A DNA stretch of 63,478 nucleotides, counting the filler, from Ministeria vibrans ATCC 50519 (lineage: Eukaryota > Protista > Filasterea): assembly GCA_943704425.1 (NCBI GenBank). It is 9 parts of 9 records of this genome, joined end to end, with 100 filler letters (N's around TTAATTAATTAA, not from the genome) between each part and the next. Parts side by side here need not be neighbours in the genome. Positions count along the whole stretch, not along the records: positions 16,623 to 31,855 come from CALSCP010000801.1; 8 more parts are not named here. The stretch is one strand, 5' to 3'. Shown here piece by piece: positions 16,623 to 31,955 of the stretch (positions are counted from its first letter, which is position 1; the number at the start of each line of letters is the position of its first letter). The position numbers were made by a program, and so were the translations under genes. The notes under the pieces are model-generated. The model had not been told where the DNA came from and searched no databases. It saw nothing but the letters and a program-made list of their open reading frames with translations.

Positions 16623-19600
16623 AGTACTGATTGGCGTAATAGCCACACTGTTGGCAACCGCGTGTGTCGCCGGCAGGAACATAATAGAGGTTTGGGCAAG
16701 CAGTACAGGACGCGCTGTTGAGAGAACGATAAGAGTGAGAAGTGCGGTATTTCCCAGAGTATAAGTGTACTAGTTGTTTCCAGGCGTGTAGGTGTTGGCA
16801 CCGCATGTGACGCAGCGAGCACGTCGACGGTACACATACTGTGTGAGAGAAAAAAAAAGAATGTGAGAGAAAAAAAAAGAATGTGAGAGAAAAAAAAAGA
16901 ATGTGAGAGACAGAGAGAGTAAGTGTCTGTGGGTGTTGATCGGAAACCTTCATCTTGCTGCACAGAAGACACTGCGACGAAGACGTTGACGCAGTCTGGC
17001 CTGTGATGTAGCCACTGGGACATGAGGGGCACGACCAGTAGGTAGCGGACGATGTGGGCTGGTAGCGACCTATCTGGCAAGCGGTACCTGACGGAGGAGA
17101 GTAAAGTAAAAAAGGACGTAATGAGTGAGATGTGGAACCACAAGCTGTCATTGGGGATGGTTCGTACACGACGGGTTAGTTGCCGAGACGGTGTAGTAGC
17201 CGGCGGGGCAGAAGTAGCAAGTAGTCGGGTACGTCTGAATGGTGCGCTTGCCATAGGGGCATCGGGGGCATCTGAAAGGGAAGAAGAAGAACTTATAATT
17301 ATATTCATTCATTTGCCAGGTTTGGTCAATTTATACGATGCGTAGCCGGTGCTCGGAGCGTAGTAGCCAGCGGGGCACGTGCGACACGATGTTTGAGCAT
17401 AGGAGTTTTGATAGCGTCCAGCAGCGCAGTAGGGGCATGACGAGGCGCCCGAGGACGGACCATACTGCAGAGTCATGGGTAAAATGGTGGTGGGGTTGTT
17501 TGTTTTGGTAGGTGTAGCTTACCCGTCCGGTCGGACACGTACGACAGTAGCCGGACGATGTACTGCCTGTGCTCGGGTTGTAACGCCCAGTGCCACAGTA
17601 AGTACACGAAGAGCGAGCGGTGTACTGGTTGTAGCGGCCGGCAGGACAGTATCGACTATGAATTGAAGCAAAATAAATAATAATAATAATATTATTATTA
17701 TTATAAATATAAAAGTATTATAATTATAAAAAATTAATAATAATAATAATTATAATTGGTACTTCGTTCTTTTTTTCCGCGCTGCTTACCAGTAGGATGA
17801 AGAAGTGGAGCCTGTTTGAGCGTTGTAGCGCCCCGTTGGGCAAACGGTACAGCTCGAGTAGCCAGTCCCAGCGGCATAACGACCAGCGGTGCAATAGAGA
17901 CAAGATGCCTGCCCACTTGATCCCTGATAGCGACCAGTTGGGCAATAGAGACACTGACCGACTGACTTGGCGTTCGTCGAACTGCGGTAACGACCTGCAG
18001 GGCAGGTGTAGCAAGACGAGCGACTATAGTACGGGTTATACTAAAATTGATAGAGGAACAGTATGAAAACAGAATCATGTGAGTGATGCGCGAGAAGGAC
18101 ACACAAAGAAATTACTCGGCCAGTTTGGCAGACATGGCAGCCGGTCGCAGCAGCCGGGCTATACTGTAACGGAGAAAAAAACAAACATTAAAATACACAA
18201 AAATAATATCAAGCAAAACAGGGTGACGTACTGTTCCGGGACCACACGACCGACAGCTGGCCTGGTACGATTGGTAGTTATACTAAAATCCAAGAAGCAT
18301 TGATTAATAAGACACTGAACGTTAACCCCAACAAACGATGCGGGAGAAAATCTTTTGGAGATTACGTATCCAGCGGCACAGTTTCGACAAGAACTCGTGG
18401 CTGTTGAAGCAGGCGAAAACTACAGATTAAGGGTATAGTTGAATTAGAGGAGTACAATCCGACAGACTGACCATTATTGATTAATATTATTGTTGAGACA
18501 CAGTATTTAATCTGATCAAATTGCTGATTACCTTCCCTGTGGGACAGCCAGCACACACGTAGTAGCGCCGGCGACGACGGCGCCGGCTGCCACCGCCGGT
18601 CCAGTACATGTAGTAGCCAGCAGAGCAGTAAGCACGGGTGCTGCGCTCGAGACCAGGTGCATTTGCCTCAGTATTCGTAGTGTCGAGGTCGCTGGCAGGT
18701 GACAGTGCAACATCGACATCGGCGTGTTCGTTGGCCCCAAAAATGGAGTCTTCAACCTCTGTCCATATGATCCATAAGAACAAAACAAAACGCATTGGAA
18801 CACGTCAGTGGGTCAAGTACTGACTGTACATGTGTGGGTGCGCAGGAGATGTGGTTTAAAAAAAGAGTACCTCGAAAACCCGCATCGAGCTCCGCCTTGT
18901 CGATATCGGCAGCGTCAAGTTGAAAGTTGGCTACAAAGATATATTTTGTAAGACGTACTAGAAAATTAATAATTATATAATAATAATAATAAAATTAATA
19001 ATAATTATTATTATTATTATTATAATAATTATAATTATTTTTATTATTATTATTATTATTATTAACAAAATCCGCCAATGGTACTGTACCTTCACGTCGC
19101 AAAGAAGTGGCCGCAAGCGAATCGCTCGTAGCCGCCTTGACCTCGTTTTGTGAAGAACCCGCTGTGGAAAAAGAAACCAAAACAGGGCAGGGGTTAATTA
19201 TTCGTTTCGTGACTTTTTTCTTGTACGTACCTTCACGTCGCGAAGAAGTGGCCGCAAGCGAATCGCTCGTAGCCGCCTTGACCTCGTTTTGTAAAGAACC
19301 CGCTGTGGAAAAAGAAACCAAAACAGGGCAGGGGTTAATTTTTCGTTTTGTGACTTTTTCCTGTACGTACATTCACGTCGCGAAGAAGTGGCCGCAAGCG
19401 AATCGCTCGTAGCCGCCTTGACCTCGTTTTGTGAAGAACCTGCTGATATGTATTAGAATGGAACATGTACAATTGGAATTATCATCAGCGATGTTGTGGT
19501 CATGGTAATTACCCTCAAGCTCTGAAGAAGTGGCACGAGCGAACGAGTCGCTTGAATCCCCCTTGACCTCAGAGCCAGAAGTGGCATCACGTCGCGAAGA

Positions 19601-20534
19601 AGTGGCACGAGCGAACGAGTCGCTTGAATCCCCCTTGACCTCGGATTGTGGTTCACCTTCAAAAAAGTAATAGTGTGTGTGTGTCAGGAAAAACTATAAG
19701 TATAGCTATAAAACATCAGAAAACAATCATACCAATCCCAGCATTGGCTTCCTTTAACTCAGCAATCGTTGCTGGAACACCCTCCCCGGCAACGTCAACG
19801 GCAAAGTTTTCCTAGGAAAAGGACGAAAGATGACCACAAAAATATTTTAATATTAATTATTTTTTCAAGGGATGCAGGGGACGCGTCTGGAACAGCCCCA
19901 GAAGATTTCAACTCCGTTCCAACACCATGCATAGGTATGCAAGGCCACCAAGGCGGCCATGGGTTGCAATTTACAAGCCGTATCGGCGTGCAATATATGG
20001 GCACGTGTTCGAGCGTGCTGGGCAGAGACGTCGCCCCACGCATCCAGCGTCCTGTCTGCACCGCAAACCGACCGCAGACCCTTTTTTATTGAAGAACAAA
20101 GAAAACGCGCTATACGTAACGAGTCAACATCCTACATCGCGCATATGTGCTACTCTATGCCCATACATCCTTAATGTTGAATTAGGTGGCGCTGGATGCA
20201 GTTGCAGCGTGCACAGGCAAAAAAAGGTTCAAAAAAGGCGAGGATGAAAATGAAAATGTCCGTGCATTCAGTCCGGTCACGCCGGTAGGTCCACGACCTG
20301 TGATGTTGCGACAGACACCTTGAATCTTTGGTGCGCCATAAGCAAGACCAACACACAGCGACTGAGCAGCCCAACGGCCAGGACAAAGCGAGATTTTCGA
20401 GAGACGTGATTGACGTGATACAAAACAAATACCTTCAACTCCCGAAGTTGAGTGACAGATACGGCCGCTCCGGCACCGGCCAGTTGAAGAGCCACAAGGG
20501 CAAGCGTCACCACAAAGACTGCGGTCACTCTCAT
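16623..20534 (-). CDS. Secreted/surface Cys-rich protein: signal peptide, repetitive pro-region, many CxxCPxGxY (GCC2/3-like) repeats; 3' end lost in gap
   Basis: MRVTAVFVVTLALVALQLAGAGA signal peptide; many short exons such as CYTCPAGRY..CLYCPTGRYQGSSGQASCLYCTAGRY, CRTCPAGYYAP, CPSCPSGY. Exon path between 19810 and 20430 not fully resolved. Confidence 0.72.
19090..19442 (-). repeat. Tandem ~140-bp exon+intron units (three 72-nt phase-1 exons)
   Basis: Near-identical units start at ~19090, 19231 and 19371; each exon encodes xGS(S/L)QNEVKAATSDSLAATS(S/L)RRE; the two internal introns are also near-identical. Confidence 0.95.
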
Positions 20535-21490
20535 CGCGTTGGGTCTTCAGATCGAATGAAAATCACTGAGAGTCTGGGGACTGGGTCTGAGTGAGACACG
20601 AAGTATAATCTGTGATGCCAAGCGTGGTTTTTAGCGATTTTGATCAGGTAGAGTTGGGGCAGTGCCGCTGGCTCGCTCGTTGCGCTCTAGTGTTGAGAGA
20701 AACGCATTGCCTCAATCGTGCAGCGGTTGTTTTTGTTTTTTCTGGGGAATGAGGGAAGTGCGATAAAACGTATCTATGGGGAGTTGGGGCTTCTTCATGA
20801 TCTTTTGGGTCTTATGAAGTATCTTCGCCTGGGGCGGAGTGAGTGGCGCCTCTCGTGTCACTTGTCTGGCCGTCGGGCGTGGACAGCGTCACTGTCTGAT
20901 GTCTCCGGGTCCGGGTGCTTCCACTCGACGCTCTTGTCGTTTAGATGTGTCGCTTTTCGTTATCAAATGTCTATTCATGTCGCTTTTCCTTTTTTTTCTT
21001 ATCAAAAAAAAACTTGAAGACTTTTCAAGAAGTGTTTAGGATATTAGCATTTCTGTCTCACTTATTCAGCGTGGTCTGACAACACCAACGCGCTCGTCCT
21101 CAGACGTCCTCAGTCTTGCCATTGTTTGCTTCTTGTGAATCTTGAAGGTTAAACAATCCAAAAAATGTCTCTCCTTACCACAACCCGCCTTTCAACCTGG
21201 ACAACAAGCGCACGCTACACGGCACGCACCCCTTAAGCTCCCTGCTATGCCCGCCGCGATTGCTTTTCGTGCTGTCCTCTTGAATCCTAATCGGGAAATC
21301 GCTCGCGCGTCACTCACTGCCACCACCACCACGCTGGAGCTCAACCGATCTCTCAACGTTAGCCCTCTTCATGTCCAGCTCTCTCACTTCATTCCTCCAG
21401 AAGACTCCCTCAACCTGAACTGTCCTTTGTCTCATTCTCACTTTTTCTTTTTTCTCTTTTTTTTGTGGTTTTTCTCTTGTTATGTAGATT

Positions 21491-22966
21491 ATGCGTCTCG
21501 CCATTCCCTTCGCAATCGCCGTTCTTGCCGTTGCAACGAACTCTCAAGCGACCACCGCACCAGCCCTGTCCGTCACGAACGCGGTCAATTTGACGCTTTC
21601 GTCGTCTGTTCAACTCAACGCCTCAAACGTTGAGCTGTCAGGCCGTCTTGTCGGGAGCGCGCCAGGCGCTGCTGAGGTCACCCATGCCCTTGTCAAGTCG
21701 CTCAATGCCAAGATCCAGGCCGCCAAGAAACTCGTGCAGAGCGCGGCTGAGTCCTTGGAGACGCACCACAACACCCAGCTGCACTTTCTTGAGCCAAACT
21801 CATCAGCTCGTGTGTTCAGCAGCCCTGTGGGCTTTAGTGGCATCGGTCTGACGGGTGCCGGCGCCGACTCGACGTCCTTTTCGGTGGGCGATTCAAACTA
21901 CTTGGTCTTTTGCGATCACGGCAAAGAACTGTGTCACCTCAGCGTGTCACTTGTGGGCGGCGCACAGCAGCCAATTGCCTCCTTCGCTGCTGCTTATGGT
22001 CGACCTAAGGCATTCACAGTGAGCTCTGGCACCTCGCTCATTGTCTATATTGTGGTTGCACAGGATGTCGAAGGGAGCACGTCCGCCTCGCACGCCACTC
22101 AAACACACCGCTTTGTGCCCACCACGGGCACTTTTAGTACGCTTGCCACATCGCCCGCAAGCTCGTTTTCGGCAAGCAGTGTCAGTATCATGACAATTGG
22201 CAGTACGGTGTACGCCGTGTGCACGCGACGCAAGTCAGCAGATGGCTCGTCCCGCGCGTCTACTTCGACCATCGCTGCCTTCAACGAAGCCAGTCGTGCC
22301 TGGACGCAGGTCAGCACCTTCTCGACCAATGGCGCCTCCGATTCGGCAGTGTACACCTCGGGCTCTAACACCTACGTGGTGGTGGCGCAGTCGGCCCTCG
22401 GTAACGGAGGTGGGATTGCCAATGTGGCGGTGGGTCGTCGTTCTGCTGTTGCCCAGTCGGCCGCTGTTTACTCCGTGAGCTCCAGCAATGGCGCCGTCAC
22501 CAAGCTACCCACAGTTGGCGTGGATATTCCAGCCGGTCACAAGATTGCTGTTTCACAGTTGACAACCACTACGGCCGGTATTTTGTTTGTGACGGACACC
22601 AACAAGGCACAAGCCTTTTTGGCACAGGGTGATGCATGGGTGACTGTGCCAACGTCGCCCACACTCGACGCGGCATCCGTCGTGCGCACTGCTTACCCCG
22701 TGCAGCTGGGTATCAACGCGCCCAGTCGTTATGTCGCTGTGTCATCGTCAACAACTCTCTACCTGAGCGAGTGGGATACCCTCACCGGTGAGCTGACCAT
22801 TCACACCGCCGCGCCCCTGTCTGGCGTCCACTCTCAGGCGAGCACGACCGTTCCTGCCCTGGTTGGCTCCTTTGCTGGCATTGACTCGCTCTTCCGAGCG
22901 ACGACTTTCCTCATGGTGGGCCGCACTCTCTACGGTGCTGACATTGTCTCCCTAGTCCCTTTTTAA
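21491..22966 (+). CDS. Secreted protein with EPTP/EAR-like beta-propeller repeats
   Basis: 491-aa ORF with signal peptide MRLAIPFAIAVLAVATNSQA; repeats such as WTQVSTFSTNGASDSAVYTSGSNTYVVVAQ and ASSVSIMTIGSTVYAV, ADSTSFSVGDSNYLVF. Confidence 0.65.
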   Translation: MRLAIPFAIAVLAVATNSQATTAPALSVTNAVNLTLSSSVQLNASNVELSGRLVGSAPGAAEVTHALVKSLNAKIQAAKKLVQSAAESLETHHNTQLHFLEPNSSARVFSSPVGFSGIGLTGAGADSTSFSVGDSNYLVFCDHGKELCHLSVSLVGGAQQPIASFAAAYGRPKAFTVSSGTSLIVYIVVAQDVEGSTSASHATQTHRFVPTTGTFSTLATSPASSFSASSVSIMTIGSTVYAVCTRRKSADGSSRASTSTIAAFNEASRAWTQVSTFSTNGASDSAVYTSGSNTYVVVAQSALGNGGGIANVAVGRRSAVAQSAAVYSVSSSNGAVTKLPTVGVDIPAGHKIAVSQLTTTTAGILFVTDTNKAQAFLAQGDAWVTVPTSPTLDAASVVRTAYPVQLGINAPSRYVAVSSSTTLYLSEWDTLTGELTIHTAAPLSGVHSQASTTVPALVGSFAGIDSLFRATTFLMVGRTLYGADIVSLVPF

Positions 22967-23603
22967 TCTTCATTGAGTGACAAAAATAAATAGAAGACAT
23001 TTCCAATTTTATCAATCACAAACGAAAAGCGACAACACAAACAGCTCAGAACCACTTTCTAAGCAATGAGAGCGTCGAGAGAGAGCAGAGACAGGTTGGC
23101 TGTTGGCCAAACAAGTGACGCGATAGGCACCAGATACACCATATCCTGGAGAGGGACATAAGGCTCTGCCAGCACAAAGGTAAAATAATAATTATTAATA
23201 ATAATAATTTTTATGATTTTTTTATAGAGCTGAAACACACACTATCAAATTTAATGAAAACACACTATCAAACTTAGTGATCTATTTTCTCACATCAACA
23301 ACTAAACAATCATTAAAACACAACAACAAGTAAGATACAAAACATAACAACAAACATCCAAGCAACATTACACACACAAAACGAAAAGCAACCAAACCCC
23401 TCAAATTCAAGATCAGTAAAACGCATATATAATACTCCAACAAACACAGCACGCGTCCAAAGTAACAAAGACGCACATCAAAGTCAACTGGAACCCTTAA
23501 CCTTATAAATTGGCTTGGTCAAGACATGAAATAATCAGAATAATCAGAATAATAATAATAGTAATAATAATAATACTAATAATAATTATTGTTGTATCAA
23601 AGG

Positions 23604-26600
23604 TCACACTGACATCATCATAGCGGCCGCACGTGCATTGACATCGCGCTCGTGATCTTCCAGCCGTTTCAATAGACCTCGGCGTTTGACAAATTGACTG
23701 GCAGTCTTGTCGTTCATCACTTGCATACGAGCACGCAGCAGCAGCGCAATTCCCTACAAACAGACATACATGCCATCAGAGAGACTGCACACAGTTCAAA
23801 ATTCAACGTACAAAGCCTTCGCACGGCATCTTCTGTGACGCACGGTACAAATCCACGCTGATCGGAGTGCGCCGATCGCATTCCAGGGCTGCAAAAAAAA
23901 AAAAAAAAAAAAAAATAGTAATAATTAATTAAATTTTTTGCTATAGTTCGAACACATACAGCCAATGGGCACGAGCCCCGACCCAATGAATTGGTCGCCA
24001 TTTAGCAGCTCAAAGTCCATGCACGACACACTGAGCACCAACTGATCCGACCAGTGCTGGATGTTAAAGGTGAACTTCTCCTCCCACTGAGGCGACAATG
24101 TGCGCTTCTTGATGGACGTTCGCATCTTCTTGTTGTCGTGCAACACGCGCCCTGTCGACTCTTGCTTGGGCGTCTATAAAAAAAANNNNNNNNNNAAAAA
24201 AAAAAAGGAGAACAAGGAAACCGTGAGAGAACCAAACGTACAAAAAAACACATTCACAAATTAAACACACGCTCACAGACACTACAAAACCACAAAGAAG
24301 ACATACCAACTCAGAACCCCACCCACATACACACACAGTCACCACAACGACGTACCAATAGCAGCTCAACGTAGGGGTCAGAGTAATTATTGTTGGTGTT
24401 CATTGATGGGAGGTCAGTCGCCCGCTTGATTGACACTGTCAAAACACGCTCCTCACCCGTCCGGAGCATGTGTATGTCAAGCTCAACCTACAACATCAAA
24501 TTAATAATAATAATAATAATTACAATACAATAATAACAAAATTATTAATAATAATACAATAATAACAAAATTAATAATAATAATACAATAATAACAAAAA
24601 ATATAATAATAATAATAATAATAATACAATAATAACAAAATTAATTATAATAATAATAATTACAATACAATAATAACAAAATTAATAATAATAATACAAT
24701 AATAACAAAATTAATAATAATAATAAAAATAAAAAATATAATAATCATTGACAGTCTTTAATAATAATAATTTACTGACGCAAATATATATATCAACATT
24801 ATGAGAACAACTCATTAATTTGTCATTTTGGCCTACCTTTCCAAACGTCTCGTTGTCTTGTGTCTTCTCTTGGGCAACCTCCAGCTCGACGAAACGCTTG
24901 ATAAGGTCCTCAGTGGGCTCGCCAATGTGCATGAGAAGCTTCAGAATGGTACGATAACGCTCGTTCTCAAGGCGCGACAGTGGCAAGCCATTGCCATTGG
25001 CGTGAAAGAAGTCGTGCAAGATCGACACAAACTTCATGTACATCTCAACGATCCAGCGGCAAGTCAGATGGCCCTTGCCGGCCTCGTACACCGCGTACAG
25101 CGTCAGTTGCCACAATCGCCACACCATCTGCTTGAACAACGGCTCGTACAACTCATCCGACATGAGCTCCAGACGCTCGTTTAGATACGACAGCAACGGC
25201 TCCGTCGCCATCGCCACCTCCTCGTCGGTCGCCACCGCCTTCACCTTCTCCTTGTCCTTGCGCTTGATCAAACGTGGCTTCGACGACTTGAGCTTGCTCG
25301 ACATCTGACGCTCCTGATCCTTGGACGCCGTGCCCACCACCAGACTTGTGTAAGCAATGATGTCGGGTGCAAATTTGCAGGCGAGTGACTGTAGCAGTTC
25401 GTCCATGACTGTGCCCAATTCGCGGTAGCAGTCCTGGAAGATCTCAATGACACGCGCGTCATAAACACCCTCTACCTGCGTGTCGCTGCGTTCCGCCTCG
25501 TCCACCTTGTCCAAATCGACAAATCCCTCGTCCTGCAACATCTTCATCACACCCTCCAGCTGGTTGTGTGCCTGTTGAATGTCGTTGGCCATGACACACA
25601 CTCGCGACGACAAGTCAAACGACGGACCGGTGTCGACAATGGACGTCTTTTTGGAAGAAGAACCCTTGCCACTGTTGGCGCCGCCCCCACTAGAGCCGGC
25701 AGCCGCCGCGCCGTTGAAAAAGCCAAGACTCTTGAGTTGTTCGAAGAGTGCCCGGCAAAACTGCGTCGTTCCCGAGCACACAATGTCCGCATAGATGCTC
25801 ATGAACATTCCAAGAGACTGCGTGTCGGACCAGCGCAGACCACGCAAAAAGGCAAGGCTCTGGTCAAAGCAGGTGAACACGTCAACAACGGACGCCGAGT
25901 ACATGTGGCCCTCGAGTGCCTTGTACTGGTCTTCACGTACACTCAAATCTACCCACGTTTTGGTCTTGGCACGACACACTGTGAGCCACTCGAGAACACA
26001 CGGTGTGAACACCCTGTATACCTCTGCCAGCTGCACGTTCTTGGAGGCACCCGCGGCAGCGTCGGTGCCGGTCGACTCACGCACGAGCGTATCCAATGGA
26101 CCGTACACATTTTCGAGGGCATCCTTCATGCGCGTCACGTGCTCGTACAAGTCAAAAACACTCGCCGACAGTTCCAAGTCGACACCCACACGCGAGACGG
26201 ATTTTTCAATCTCGCCCATCAACAGCGTGAGATACGCCTGAATCGTAATGGTGCCGTAGTCAATGTTGTGCTGCTTGAAAATGGGATGAAATTCGCGACA
26301 GCCCATGCAAATCTCGTCAGTGACCATGCCCGTGAGCAGCGACAATTGATGGAACACAGCGTACGAGGCAAAGCCGTCGCTCTTCACATGGGCCGCTTGC
26401 TTTTCATGACGGTCGCGTGCCATGCGGCGCATGAGACGGTACATGCGTGACACGCCTTGGCGAAGAGCCGCCGGAATAGCATCCTCAAACGACGCCAGGC
26501 CTTCGTTGTATTGCATCCACGCCTTGGTCTCGCGAACGCGCTTCAGCAGCGCTAGCGACGCGTTCACTTGACTGTACGAGTCGACACTGGTCGCCTTGGC

Positions 26601-29600
26601 CGGCACACCATCACTAGAACTGGAGTGGTCGCCAAAATCTTCGCGTAAACACGAAATGGTTCGCTCCAAGCGGCCACTCAAGTGCGCCAACGCTCGCCCA
26701 ATGCGTGCCTGTTCCTCCGGCCCAAACAACTCGTCGAGTCCGCTACCACTCAACTCGGTGATCTGGCTGAGAACAACATTGCGATTGACGCCCGCATAAA
26801 TGGTGTCGTGCGACAGACTGCAAATGCGAATGGCTGTGCGCTGCGGAAACGTCACGCCGTGATGGAGGCACCACTGTTCGCACAGCTGCTGTGCTGCCGT
26901 GGGCACCTCGGCCGCCCACAGAGGCATGCGCTCGTACGTGACGGGTACCTTGTCGACGGGTACCAGCACACACGTGTCGCCGCGACACCGCACCAGTGAC
27001 GAGCCAGCGTCGCCATAGGCACCCTTTGACTCGCGCTCAAAATGCGACGCGTACTCCGTCCTGACGACGAGACCGTCGAGTGCAACAAACTGCGCCAGGT
27101 CCGTCTCGGAAGCGTGCACCACGGTGCTTTCGGCCGGAACCGAGCTCTTCTTGCCCTTGCCCGTCGCGCTTGAGCCGCCGGCGGTGTGCACCCGGCGTTC
27201 AAAAGACACGCCAAACTCGATGTCGCCACTGATGTTGGATCGCTTCGAGCGCTTCTCGAGAGTCACCCACTGGGCCGAGTGGCCGGCGTGCTCGTCGAGT
27301 GGCACCACGACGCGCCCAAGAAAGTCGGGCTTTTCACCCTTGGACAGCTTCGCCAGTGTCTCGCGGTTGTTCAAGTTGTCGTTCCACAGCTCGAGAACCA
27401 CGTGTGTGGCACGGCCATCGTCATCTGACAGCTGGAAGACTTGTTTCTCCCAGCGTGGATCGCACGAGCGCACAATAGGCGTTCGCTGGTGTCGTTCGAC
27501 GTCGAGTGTGGTGTCGGATGGATCGCGCACAAGCGCCACGGAACAGAAGCAGTCGTTGCTGCGATCCTTTTGAGTCTTCACTCCCTTCGCTGTGAGGCCA
27601 CGCGCGCCGCGCACGTCCACTGTCACATGCATACGTGCCACCTTGGAGGTGGCACCAAGACCACTAGTACCAGTCGCCGCCTCATTCTTGGCCGCCACCT
27701 TCAGAATCACCTCGGCGACCTTGGACGCGTGATCTTCGTCACTGACACGAAACAGTTGACGAGCGTACGCAAAAAGTTCGTCGTTGGACAGCGCAGTTGA
27801 CTGCGCTCCCAGTCCCACCGTGCCATCAGCTTTGGGGTGGCTCTTGGACAGAAGGTTGAAGCCGCGACTAGACTGGTGGTCGCTGGCAAGCTCGGCGGGA
27901 ACGCGACAGACGATGGCCGTGAGCACTGACTCGTACAGTTGATCCATTTGCGCCTGGGGAAGAGGACCATCATCGTTGGTGGCTGACAGAGCATCTGCAG
28001 TGGCCAACGAATCGTCAGGGCTCCCAAACGTGGCGGCTGCCACATCACGGGCAGTCTGGCGGATGTCACGCGTCTCTAGCGGCTGTCGTTTCGACCACTC
28101 ATTCTCAGCGGTCGTACCGGTGCACGAGTAGTTATTGAAAAACTCCGCCTGTGCCGCACCCAGAGTCAACTCGATCTTCTCACGCTTCTTCGAGTGAAAC
28201 AGCATGCGCGCGACACTCGCAAGTTTCGCTGTTGCCTTGGCCGCCGTCGCTGCCAGCGCCACCTGAGCAGCCGTCTCAGCATCGTCTTCACTCTCGTCCT
28301 CACTTTCCCCCTTGGTCTCCGGAGCGGAAGACGCGAGCGATGCGGCCTTTGTGGTGTCCTCACAAGCCAGCGCCTCCTCCTTCTCCTTGGCAGCATTTTT
28401 CTTCGCTTGTGCCGCCTCTTTTCTCTCCTTCTCCTCCGCCTGCTTCTTTATTTTCTTCTCCTCCTCCTCCGCTGCCTCCTCCGCCTGCTTCTTCTTCTTT
28501 TTCATTTCAGCTGCTTCCTTCTCCTTCCGTTCGCGCTCCTCTTCTTCGAGTGCGAGTTTGGCCAGCGCTGCTGCGTGTGCTGCTGCTTCCGCTTTCTCAG
28601 CCTGACGCTTGCGTTCGGCTGCTTCCTTCGCCTCACAAGCAGCACGGGCGGCCTCCTCTTCCGCTTGGCGCTTGCGTGTCTCCGCCTCGACTGCACGGCG
28701 CGCCGCTTCCGCTGCCTCCTCCTCTGCCTGGCGCTTGCGTTCTGCCTCTTCCTCGGCTGACTTTTTCTGGCGTGCCGCCTCCTCGTCCGCCTCGCGTTTC
28801 TTCTGTTGCGCCAGTGCCTCTTCCTCCTGCTTGTGTCGCCGCTTCTCTTCAGCGTCCTTCTCCTTCTTGCGTCTCGCCGCCTCTTGCTCCTTCTTCTTCT
28901 TCGTCCAGTTCGCCTCCAGCACCAGTCGCTCTTGTTCTTCCGCCGCCTCCTTGGCACGACGTGCTTCTTCCGCCGCCTCGGCTTGTCGCTTGCGTTCTGC
29001 TCGTTCTTCTTCGGCCTTGCGCTCGCGCTCCACCTTCTCCTCGGCCTCAATCCGCTCGCGCTCGGCCTTGTCGGCCGCCTCGCGTTCACGACGCACACGC
29101 GCTGCTTCCTCGGCCGCAGCTTTGGCCGCCTCCTCCTCCTCGGCAGCCTTGGCAGCGGCCGCAGCGGCTATTTCAGCGCGTCGTTGTGCCTGTTCTTCCG
29201 CCTTTTCGGCCTCGTGTTTGCGCGCTGCCGCTGCAAGTTCCTCTTCGCTTGGCGCCGCCGCCTCCTCCGTCCCAAACACCGAGCTGCTCGCTTGCGCCGA
29301 CGAGAGCACCATAATGGACTCGTGTGCGGCGGGCATGTCGTGTTTGGCCCTCTTTGTGGGCGTCAACTTGTCGTCGGTGGCGTCTCCCGACGTGTTCGTG
29401 CCGTTGCTGTGCGTGCTTTCCGCGCGTTTGGGCACGAGGGTCATGGCGGCGTTCAGGTCGAAGCAGCCGTCGCCGAGTGCTTCATGCACAAACTGGAGGA
29501 TGTCGCGAGCAGAGGCGGTAGCACTCGTCGTAAGAACAATGGGCTCCTCGCCGACGGGGAACAGCTTGATGAGGGGAGGCGACGTGACTGTGTCGTAGTC

Positions 29601-30149
29601 CGGGAATAGGCGAGCGCTGACTTGCTCGTTGGCACAGTCAAGGTGACACTGGGTAAGATTGCGAGCGGGCACGGCGGCAAGCGACGAAGCCGCGACAACG
29701 TACGCTCGAGTGGCGGGGCGCGGGGCAACAAGGACAAGGATGTGGGCGGTGGAGCGGACCATCAACTCCTCGAGTTCGTCGGCCGTACAGTCGTAAATGG
29801 GGCGGCCGTCTTTGGGCGTGAACGACAGCACCGCCGGTGTCGTCGGCTGCACATAGGAGCGATGCTTCTCGCTTGTGTCCGCCAGCGCCTCGATCCAGTG
29901 GTGCATTTCGTCGTCGTTCTCGGCACAAGCAAAAAATGTTCGCTGTGGTGTCACTATGCGAAAACAGTGGGCCCTGCTGCGCTCCTCGCTTGCATCCGAC
30001 ACCTCCTTGATCTCGCGGAGTGAGACGGCCCCCTTCGGCCGCGTCGCATTCGGCGAGTCCGAATACACAAGCATAGTGCGCTCACATGAAAAATAGCGAC
30101 GCTTCCAGTTCTTGCGCTGTCCTCCCTCTTTCAGCAGCCATCCTTCCAT
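23604..30149 (-). CDS. Munc13-4/BAIAP3-like protein (C2-MUN-C2) with N-terminal PH, thioredoxin-like and long charged helical regions
   Basis: PH: MEGWLLKEGGQRKNWKRRYF..WIEAL. C2A: HVTVDVRGARGL..NDCFC..PRW..ELWNDN..DFLG..WVTLEKRSKRSNISGDI. MUN: F.P.V.EWL..YSASVVDVFTCF, CVMANDIQ, PLLSYLNERL, DFFHANGNGL. Spliced C2B: LTVSIKRATDL..SDPYV..TSIKKRTLSPQWEEKF. First exon 30149-24837; stop 23604-23606. Confidence 0.9.
24505..24725. repeat. Intronic AT-rich minisatellite (AATAATAATACAATAATAACAAAATT-like units)
   Basis: Several imperfect tandem copies are visible. Confidence 0.8.
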
Positions 30150-30391
30150 CTTCTTCGTACTGTCGGTTCAAAGAACAGACGCGAAGACAAACGCCGAGGT
30201 GAAAATTATTATTATTATTAGTATTATTATTTTATTTTTCGGAGGGAATTTCTCAAAAAATATAATAACTCTATAAAGTAAAAATTGCCGAATTCAGACT
30301 TGAGATCGCTGATCCCTTGAGGGCGTTGTGCCTTCTTCTTCAGTTTTTCGTCTTCAATTATTTTTGAGTTGATCCGACAGCCACTGCGCCC

Positions 30392-31218
30392 ATGTCAACC
30401 AGCGGCGCATCCGACACGCCTGTCGCGGTGGACTCCGCTTTGCCTCTCAAGGTGTGTGGGGGGTCCTTTTGCGTTCGTGTGCTTCTCCTCACTCCCCCTT
30501 GCGTAGGTTTTTGACAGCGATGGTAACGAGCACACCTTTGCGTCCCTCATGAGCCCAAACGACGACGAGTACACAATGGTGTTTTTCGTGCGACAGTAAG
30601 TTTTTGTCTGTGCTTTTGCATATTCGCTTTCATGTCTGACTCGTTCTCTGTCACATTTGGAAGCTTCCTGTGATACGTGTGCCGCGAGTACGCCGAAGGT
30701 ATGCCACGACGACGATGCGTACGGTCGCATCGGCACTCACCTGTTTTTTTGGCTTCTTTATGTTCGTTCTTGTCGCAGACCTTGCTCAAGTGTCGACTGC
30801 GTCTCTCGCGGAGCGCAAGGCGCGCGTTGTCATTATCGGATGCGCCAAGCCCAAGTTCATTGCGGCGTTCAAGTCTTCGTTGCGTATCCCCTTTGACGTG
30901 TATGCCGACCCTGACCGTTCCGTCTACCTTGCGCTCGGCCTCAAGCACGACAAGTCTCTTGTTCGCATCAGTGGACAGTCGGCGCACGTCAAGAGCGGCT
31001 TCACCATGGGCATCTTCAAGGCGATTGGCGTAGGTCTCAAGTCTCTGCAAATGCAGGGTGATGTTTATCAGCAGGGCGGCGCCTTTGTCTTCCGCGGGCC
31101 CCAGACACTTCTGTACTCACATGTAGACGGCTCACCAATGGACCACGCGCCTATCAACGACGTCCTCGCTGTGTGTGGCGTCGAGTCTCTTGCCTTGCCC
31201 CACTTGGTCAAGGCCTAG
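30392..31218 (+). CDS. PRXL2C: Selenoprotein of the AAED1/PRXL2C (SelU, AhpC-TSA_2) family, Sec encoded by TGA at 30671-30673
   Basis: Exons 30392-30451, 30507-30595, 30664-30698, 30779-31218 give ..VFFVRHFL-U-YVCREYAEDLAQ..VVIIG..FDVYADPDRSVYLALGLK..QGDVYQQGGAFVF..H.D..PMDHAPINDVL, matching human AAED1 VFVRHFLCYICKEYVEDLA as I recall it. Confidence 0.92.
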
Positions 31219-31274
31219 CGGGCGCTCTGTAACTTCTCCTCTTGCTGCGTGTACACTCCTTTCCCCATGACACC

Positions 31275-31365
31275 TCCCCCTCGACGATGACGGCACACTT
31301 CCTCAAGGAACACCTCGCTAGTGTTCACGGAGTCCGTGCCCGATGCATACATAACCTGAAGGGAA
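31275..31365 (+). promoter_or_regulatory. Type II SECIS element in 3' UTR
   Basis: ATGAC core 31287-31291; helix GGCAC/GTGCC plus ACTTCC/GGAGT; unpaired AA 31305-31306; apical mini-stem GAACAC/GTGTTC; 3' core CGAT 31341-31344. Confidence 0.88.
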
Positions 31366-31480
31366 CTGTCCAATCGAAATGAAGTCTAATTCAGTCACTA
31401 CTATAATAATAATTCACATAAAATAGAGCAGCCAGCTGCTGCAGCGACAACAGCAGTGACAGCAGCGAGGTCGGTCGAGT

Positions 31481-31682
31481 TTAGTCAGAGAGGGCGTCGC
31501 CCGAGTAGTTCCAATCATCTTCGAGTTGGTCGCCACTGTCTTTCTTCAAGTCGAGCTGCTCAATGCTGCCAAGCGGCGCAAACACCCGATCCGACTTGCG
31601 CACTTTGAGCTTGTTGTCAAGCAGCTTGAGTACACGCAGCTTGGCCTGCGAGCGGAACAGGTTGTCGGGCAGTGAAGTAAGT
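31481..31682 (-). CDS. Last exon of a leucine-rich-repeat protein (remainder lost in gap)
   Basis: LTSLPDNLFRSQAKLRVLKLLDNKLKV..VFAPLGSIEQLDL; pyrimidine tract and AG acceptor at ~31684. Confidence 0.75.
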
Positions 31683-31770
31683 CTGCAGAAGAAAAAAATT
31701 AATGACAACAAATCGACAAGAACCATCTTGTGTGTGTAAAATATACAAAATTTAATAATACTTATAATAC

Positions 31771-31854
<84 letters not shown>

Positions 31855-31955
31855 GNNNNNNNNNNNNNNNNNNNNNNNNNNNNNNNNNNNNNNNNNNNNT
31901 TAATTAATTAANNNNNNNNNNNNNNNNNNNNNNNNNNNNNNNNNNNNNNNNNNNN

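Follow-up and report, generated by a model that had tools for sequence, protein, structure and literature searches.

A stretch of 63,478 nucleotides from the filasterean Ministeria vibrans ATCC 50519 (GenBank assembly GCA_943704425.1), made of nine parts joined end to end and here called the window, was used for the analysis; positions count along the window. The 15.2-kb piece at 16,623 to 31,855 (CALSCP010000801.1) contains a four-exon gene at 30392-31218 on the plus strand, with its ATG at 30392 and a TAG at 31216-31218, whose predicted protein is most like peroxiredoxin-like 2C (PRXL2C, also named AAED1 or C9orf21) of the AhpC-TSA_2 family. Its third exon carries an in-frame TGA at the position of a conserved redox cysteine, and its 3' untranslated region (UTR) holds a hairpin that resembles a selenocysteine insertion sequence (SECIS). 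Our analysis makes it very probable that this is an expressed selenoprotein gene of the PRXL2C type, in which the UGA of codon 53 is decoded as selenocysteine (Sec) by means of a 3' UTR SECIS element.

Exon structure and transcripts

The coding sequence is composed of four exons (60, 89, 35 and 440 nt; Table 1) and amounts to 624 nt, or 207 codons plus the TAG, with the TGA at 30671-30673 in phase 0. The original prediction, made from the DNA alone, had proposed three introns and the spliced reading RHFL-TGA-YVC-REYAEDL. Both were borne out by contigs from runs X1, X3, X7 and X13, which belong to four studies (X13 being a poly(A) marine metatranscriptome). The joints found in the contigs (30451/30507, 30595/30664 and 30698/30779) are exactly the predicted set and all are of the GT..AG type, the intron ends being GTGTGT..GCGTAG for intron 1, GTAAGT..GGAAG for intron 2 and GTATGC..CGCAG for intron 3.

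Three outcomes had been named in advance as speaking against a selenoprotein, namely TGC or TGT in place of the TGA, skipping of the 35-nt exon, and a transcript end before the hairpin. None was seen. The contigs of the four runs contain no substituted, missing or added letters, so the TGA is present in the mRNA; every contig crossing the region retains the 35-nt exon; and transcript cover is unbroken through the hairpin, X1 spanning 30315 to beyond 31480, X3 30359 to beyond 31480, and a single X7 contig covering 30872-31392. The TGA is identical across the four transcript assemblies, whose labels name three organisms and a marine metagenome, and FL-TGA-YVC is also the reading of L003 and L004, two metagenomic DNA contigs from this organism. 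A sequence index matched the stretch to runs from ten studies, and these runs indicate a marine eukaryote. Most of them contain about 0.55-0.67 of the words of the stretch, as expected of spliced RNA, and the DNA runs X19 and X20 contain all of the sampled words. The gene is real and expressed.

Table 1. Features of the PRXL2C-type gene and its transcript in the window.
Feature	Position	Strand	Details
5' UTR, minimum extent	30315..30391	+	no upstream ATG; contigs start at 30315 (X1), 30359 (X3) and 30375 (X7)
Coding exon 1	30392..30451	+	20 codons, MSTSGASDTPVAVDSALPLK; joint 30451/30507 in X1, X3 and X7 and in a loose end of X13
Intron 1	30452..30506	+	55 nt, GT..AG
Coding exon 2	30507..30595	+	89 nt; VFDSDGNEHTFASLMSPNDDEYTMVFFVR plus 2 nt of the His codon
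Intron 2	30596..30663	+	68 nt, GT..AG; seen in four runs
Coding exon 3, micro-exon	30664..30698	+	35 nt, (H)FL-UGA-YVCREYAE; in all four transcript assemblies
In-frame TGA, proposed Sec	30671..30673	+	codon 53; aligns with the conserved first Cys of CxxC
Intron 3	30699..30778	+	80 nt, GT..AG; seen in four runs
Coding exon 4, AhpC-TSA_2 domain	30779..31218	+	(D)LAQVS...HLVKA, then TAG at 31216-31218; PF13911
3' UTR, minimum extent	31219..31392	+	end of the X7 contig at 31392
SECIS-like element, type II	31269..31370	+	descriptor and core-constrained fold

Since exon 3 is 35 nt long, its skipping would break the frame, and such a frame-breaking exon could offer control of selenoprotein output at the level of splicing. 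Comparison of intron positions between lineages revealed an intron immediately ahead of the His of RHFL(C/U), in phase 0, in Priapulus (L011:749/1994) and Trichoplax (L007:2662/3646); the corresponding intron of the Ministeria gene (30595/30664) lies 2 nt further on. The intron after EY(A/V)E occupies the same place and phase in Trichoplax (L007:3682) and here (30698/30779). The genes of Sycon (L010) and Salpingoeca rosetta have no introns at these motif positions. If the intron positions are homologous, a Sec form of PRXL2C with such exons would predate the animals, and the Sec-bearing micro-exon may be an ancient unit, a proposal to which we attach a rather low probability. In that case the source of the gene may be related to the holozoans or belong to a lineage with an undescribed selenoproteome.

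Protein family, redox motif and annotation of the Sec forms

Searches were made with single exons, the UGA being kept as a stop. Exon 4 (145 amino acids) matched the Pfam family AhpC-TSA_2 (PF13911; E = 8.2e-16, 58.8 bits against a cut-off of 27). An exhaustive HMMER search with this exon retrieved 432 relatives; a word-indexed protein search with it found nothing beyond P0001, the open reading frame (ORF) of the locus itself. The named relatives are annotated as peroxiredoxin-like 2C, thioredoxin-like AAED1 or C9orf21 homologue and score 65-80 bits. They come from Sycon (79.5 bits), lampreys (73.4), Xenopus, primates (Mandrillus, 64.9), Priapulus, Anneissia, Lineus, Biomphalaria and Trichoplax. 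In a language-model atlas the top cluster was 'C9orf21 protein' (0.95). Judged by best hits and motif, PRXL2C is the subfamily that the protein appears to resemble most, in agreement with the AAED1/PRXL2C assignment originally proposed, all named matches being of this type; the tree did not settle the placement. In that domain tree of 68 sequences, built without a PRXL2A/B outgroup, the gene and its S. rosetta relative fell in a basal polytomy (88/79) near bacterial-like sequences, between the animal and fungal PRXL2C-like proteins and the bacterial-like clade.

Analysis of the full-length Cys forms revealed the motif VRHFLCY(V/I)C(K/R)(D/E)YVEDLA immediately before the region matched by exon 4. 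At this motif the gene reads VR/HFL-TGA-YVCREYAE/DLA (slashes at the exon joints). Cys forms read VRHFLCYVCRDY and similar, and tblastn pairs FLCYVCRDYMKELAR with FL-TGA-YVCREYAE. The cysteine that the original prediction had named for mammalian AAED1 is present in P0031 and P0136, which read HFLCYICKEYVEDLA. The first cysteine of the motif is conserved, and at the second position homologues have C, S, T, A or G, hence the UGA replaces the key redox residue. The resulting UxxC-type motif follows the hydrophobic strand VFFVRHFL and stands just N-terminal of the region matched by PF13911. Homology is found on both sides of the UGA, since upstream of it exon 2 is 48% identical to the N-terminus of the S. 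rosetta protein over exactly 30507-30593 and downstream of it lies the PF13911 match.

Several other loci also carry an in-frame TGA in this column, across which the homology continues: S. rosetta PTSG_04672 (L001), Trichoplax sp. H2 (L007), the metagenomic eukaryote-like loci L002, L005/L006 and L009, and the bacterial-like contig L008. The S. rosetta gene reads VRHFL-TGA-FYCKYYIEDLAKVP in a single tblastn high-scoring segment pair (E = 2e-38). L002, a metagenomic contig of 328 kb, reads IRHFL-TGA-YVGKEYIMDLAKVP (IRHFL-TGA-YVGKEY; E = 3e-54), and L005/L006 read VRHFL-TGA-YVCKEYVDELAKIP (VRHFL-TGA-YVCKEY). The Trichoplax micro-exon encodes HFL-TGA-YICKEYVE, L009 reads RHML-TGA-FMCRDYLLDLD, and L008 reads LVRHFG-TGA-MFCREQVAQL.

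Gene finders had been expected to miss the Sec-bearing exon, and this was seen three times. The only database protein of the Ministeria locus is P0001 (152 amino acids), which begins within intron 3. The public S. rosetta model (EGD72940.1, 167 amino acids) excises as a false 'intron' a 42-nt GT..AG stretch (L001:2603-2644) that contains the TGA (2618-2620) and the entire redox motif VRHFL-U-FYCKYYIE; PTSG_04672 looks like a misannotated selenoprotein. The 'Thioredoxin-like protein AAED1' of Trichoplax sp. H2 (RDD47937.1, 184 amino acids) skips the 37-nt micro-exon (L007:3646-3682) that carries its TGA. Trichoplax also has a second AhpC-TSA_2 gene in tandem (L007:7312-8213). Among the 150 best AhpC-TSA_2 representatives (P0001-P0150), 58 start immediately past the redox motif, with MFCREQV... 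and MCRDYLL... as examples. The two of these that were checked both have an in-frame TGA directly upstream (L008:469-660, LVRHFG-TGA-MFCREQ; L009:801-1004, RHML-TGA-FMCRDY), and starts of this kind are what gene callers yield on stopping at a Sec codon. The Sec forms of the family thus appear to be systematically truncated in protein collections. Our analysis corrects an annotation blind spot at a locus known in databases only as a truncated ORF, and the same error affects the two public models and probably dozens more members that start past the motif.

The hairpin in the 3' UTR and the surroundings of the gene

SECIS elements are recognised by an [A/G]UGA..GA quartet, a helix II, an unpaired AA and an apical loop or mini-stem. 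The original prediction had placed a type II hairpin with an AUGA/GA core, an AA and a mini-stem about 70 nt past the TAG, and this was verified, the AUGA (31287-31290) beginning 69 nt past the stop codon and facing a GA at 31342-31343. When the hairpin is read as a SECIS, the quartet U·U, G·A, A·G and C·C is formed with C-G-A-U at 31341-31344. Helix II (31292-31304/31329-31340) consists of GGCAC/GUGCC (31292-31296/31336-31340) and a second segment, either CUC/GAG or ACUUC/GGAGU with a CC bulge (-16.4 or -15.7 kcal/mol). The unpaired AA (31305-31306) stands 13 nt into the 5' strand. The mini-stem GAACAC/GUGUUC has 6 bp (31308-31313/31321-31326) and closes a 7-nt loop (31314-31320), which makes the hairpin type II. 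Lower helices are formed by 31269-31283/31357-31370. With the core held open, a 119-nt segment folded at -24.1 kcal/mol, compared with -25.8 kcal/mol for its free minimum. The upper stem-loop has a free energy of -16.4 kcal/mol (z = -2.2), which is equalled by 2.8% of shuffles.

Using a custom generic descriptor ([A/G]UGAN, a closing helix adjacent to the core, at least 7 pairs, an unpaired AA 9-14 nt in, and NGA), three matches were found in 30.4 kb, that is on both strands of the 15.2-kb piece, where the shuffle mean was 7.6. The hairpin at 31287-31344 is the sole match of the piece that lies in a 3' UTR, and about 0.01-0.04 would be expected by chance per 175-nt UTR. The same descriptor identified one hairpin in each of three orthologues, 72 nt (L002), 90 nt (L007) and 310 nt (L001) after the stop codon. 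The Trichoplax hairpin (L007:5803-5853) has an AUGA core. MAFFT alignments of the three orthologous SECIS candidates were not structurally consistent. In Ministeria the hairpin has the features of a SECIS element by descriptor and constrained fold, and it lies within the transcribed UTR.

Upstream of the gene, on the minus strand at 24711-30149, lies an ORF of 1812 codons. It encodes a PH domain at the N-terminus and a MUN (Munc13-like) domain at the C-terminus, separated by a few hundred residues in which Glu, Ala, Lys and Arg are abundant; a word-based search for homologues of this protein found nothing. Its last approximately 30 residues look like read-through into AT-rich sequence, and the true end is probably spliced. 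The start of this ORF is approximately 240 nt from the ATG of the PRXL2C-type gene on the opposite strand, and 30150-30391 forms a divergent promoter region. Downstream, a convergent gene occupies 31481-31726 (minus strand) and beyond, its TAA being separated from the end of the X7 contig by approximately 90 nt. Contigs of X1 and X3 extend approximately 1.07 kb beyond 31480 and are seemingly merged with the transcript of this neighbour; transcripts of the two genes were assembled together and their 3' ends may overlap. Microsatellites of the (ATT)n/(AAT)n type occur in intergenic AT-rich sequence at 30207-30240 and 31755-31855, the second reaching the edge of the piece. Further away, an ORF of 491 codons at 21491-22966 (plus strand) lies in a GC-rich stretch; neither Pfam nor the word-indexed protein search yielded a match for it.

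Decoding of the UGA codon and comparison with known systems

The recoding of UGA as Sec in an AAED1-type gene, as the original prediction had it, is supported by the conserved Cys column, the TGAs of the orthologues and the hairpin. It would proceed in the ordinary eukaryotic way. The type II SECIS element (core 31287-31344), which in the mRNA follows the UGA at a distance of approximately 530 nt, would recruit SBP2, eEFSec and Sec-tRNA[Ser]Sec, and codon 53 would then be read as Sec rather than as a stop. The predicted product is a thioredoxin-fold protein of 207 residues with a UxxC redox centre, RHFL-C-xx-C having become RHFL-U-YV-C. By analogy with the family, Sec53 would be the redox residue that attacks and Cys56 the one that resolves, the two forming a selenenylsulfide. 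In mammals, stop codons are judged for nonsense-mediated decay by a 50-55-nt rule. The UGA is 25 nt upstream of the last exon junction, a distance that would spare the mRNA from this decay if the mammalian rule applies here. A tRNA search of the 15-kb piece found none.

Several observations weigh against this reading. Rfam cmscan at E <= 10 returned no SECIS family either for 30000-31855 or for the 182-nt UTR alone, its output being limited to chance matches of snoRNA and miRNA families far under the gathering scores. The same search of the S. rosetta 3' region likewise missed the SECIS-like element there, hence we take the miss to be mainly a sensitivity limit of the models for non-metazoan SECIS elements. 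The free fold of 31270-31365 is no stabler than shuffles (z = -0.12), the free minimum pairs part of the AUGA, helix II is interrupted by an internal loop or bulge, and helix I is weak. Furthermore, the three neighbouring ORFs all end in TAA, so that use of TGA as a stop is not directly seen in the piece, and the runs are assembled contigs, in which rare isoforms, transcript ends and the poly(A) site are not visible.

The lack of TGA stops (the PRXL2C-type gene itself ending in TAG), together with the silence of the Rfam models, is also what would be seen if UGA were read as Cys or Trp, through codon reassignment in the lineage or near-cognate readthrough, with the hairpin being incidental. 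We consider this improbable. The adjacent 1812-codon ORF contains 33 Cys and 17 Trp codons and not one TGA, so TGA is not a common sense codon here, and the single TGA of the gene falls exactly on the redox Cys, a typical Sec position. S. rosetta, Trichoplax and further lineages, which use the standard code, share the TGA at this column, and SECIS-shaped 3' UTR hairpins occur here and in three orthologues. That TGA normally means stop, and that the standard ORF call makes the domain a separate protein of 152 residues, would suit a nonsense allele or pseudogene yielding a 52-residue peptide with no downstream domain. This reading has very little probability in view of the same TGA in four transcript assemblies under several labels and in two metagenome contigs, of a downstream domain that is intact and far over the Pfam threshold, of independent lineages retaining TGA at the column, and of the SECIS-like element itself. 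Error in sequencing or assembly, with TGC or TGT as the true codon, is close to negligible: contigs from four runs of four studies have no differing letters, every sampled word of the stretch occurs in the DNA runs X19 and X20, and L003 and L004 read the same.

The gene may also be a true selenoprotein gene whose functional SECIS element lies elsewhere in a longer 3' UTR, the hairpin at 31287-31344 being without function. The only modest excess of its stability over shuffles, the lack of support from Rfam and the extension of X1 and X3 past 31480, which leaves the end of the UTR undefined, would fit this. It is nevertheless scarcely probable, given that the hairpin is the only descriptor match on this strand downstream of the stop codon within the piece, that its distance from the stop resembles those in L002 and Trichoplax, and that the coding region of the convergent gene lies beyond approximately 31480.

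With decoding of codon 53 as Sec through the 3' UTR hairpin as the preferred reading, this marine eukaryote would almost certainly have a working Sec insertion system and depend on selenium for at least one redox enzyme. Within the SelU family, the PRXL2C-type branch would thereby gain one more lineage that keeps Sec, in line with the view that Sec is the ancestral state of the family and gave way to Cys in vertebrates. The identification is useful for annotation and reveals no new mechanism.

Comparison with known systems showed likeness at several distances. Bacterial Sec-containing AhpC/TSA_2 (Prx-like) proteins share the UGA at the motif position (LVRHFG-TGA-MFCREQV in L008), and many of their representatives are cut off just past it; they differ in having the SECIS directly downstream of the UGA and SelB, with no kink-turn element in a 3' UTR and no introns. 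PRXL2B (prostamide/prostaglandin F synthase; 9us9 in the PDB; 'SelU3', PMC3473315) is homologous over residues 35-136 of exon 4 (E = 1.4e-4) but is not the nearest subfamily, because it scores just 25.3 bits compared with 65-80 for PRXL2C. SelU1 (PRXL2A, C10orf58), with Sec in fish, birds, algae and diatoms (PMC2375036, PMC3316567), shares the Pfam family, the thioredoxin-like fold, Sec in the redox motif and a eukaryotic 3' UTR SECIS; it belongs to another subfamily, the named matches of the Ministeria gene all being of the PRXL2C type in a comparison that contained no PRXL2A sequence. The closest single relative, with 50% identity, is S. rosetta PTSG_04672 (EGD72940.1). Its in-frame TGA occupies the corresponding column (L001:2618-2620) and has homologous sequence on either side, and its 3' region contains a type II SECIS-like hairpin (L001:3356-3406). 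It differs in having no introns around the motif, a GUGA instead of an AUGA core, and the hairpin approximately 310 nt past the stop codon.

Fish, birds and unicellular eukaryotes, including algae and diatoms, are the groups for which SelU was described as a selenoprotein, with Ostreococcus and Thalassiosira among the listed Sec forms (PMC2375036). In vertebrates, SelU2 and SelU3 have Cys (PMC3316567). According to Jiang et al. (2012), many of the SelU proteins with Sec in marine invertebrates are SelU2 (C9orf21-like) or SelU3 (PMC3473315), and the Ministeria gene is therefore not new in kind. With PRXL2C/AAED1/C9orf21 ('SelU2', PMC3473315) it shares the AhpC-TSA_2 domain, a similar length (207 compared with 203-240 amino acids) and the near-identical motif VRHFL[C/U]Y(V/I)C(K/R)(D/E)Y(V/A)EDLA. 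It differs from these proteins in that vertebrate and many invertebrate members have Cys where the gene has UGA, and in that its source is a unicellular marine eukaryote.

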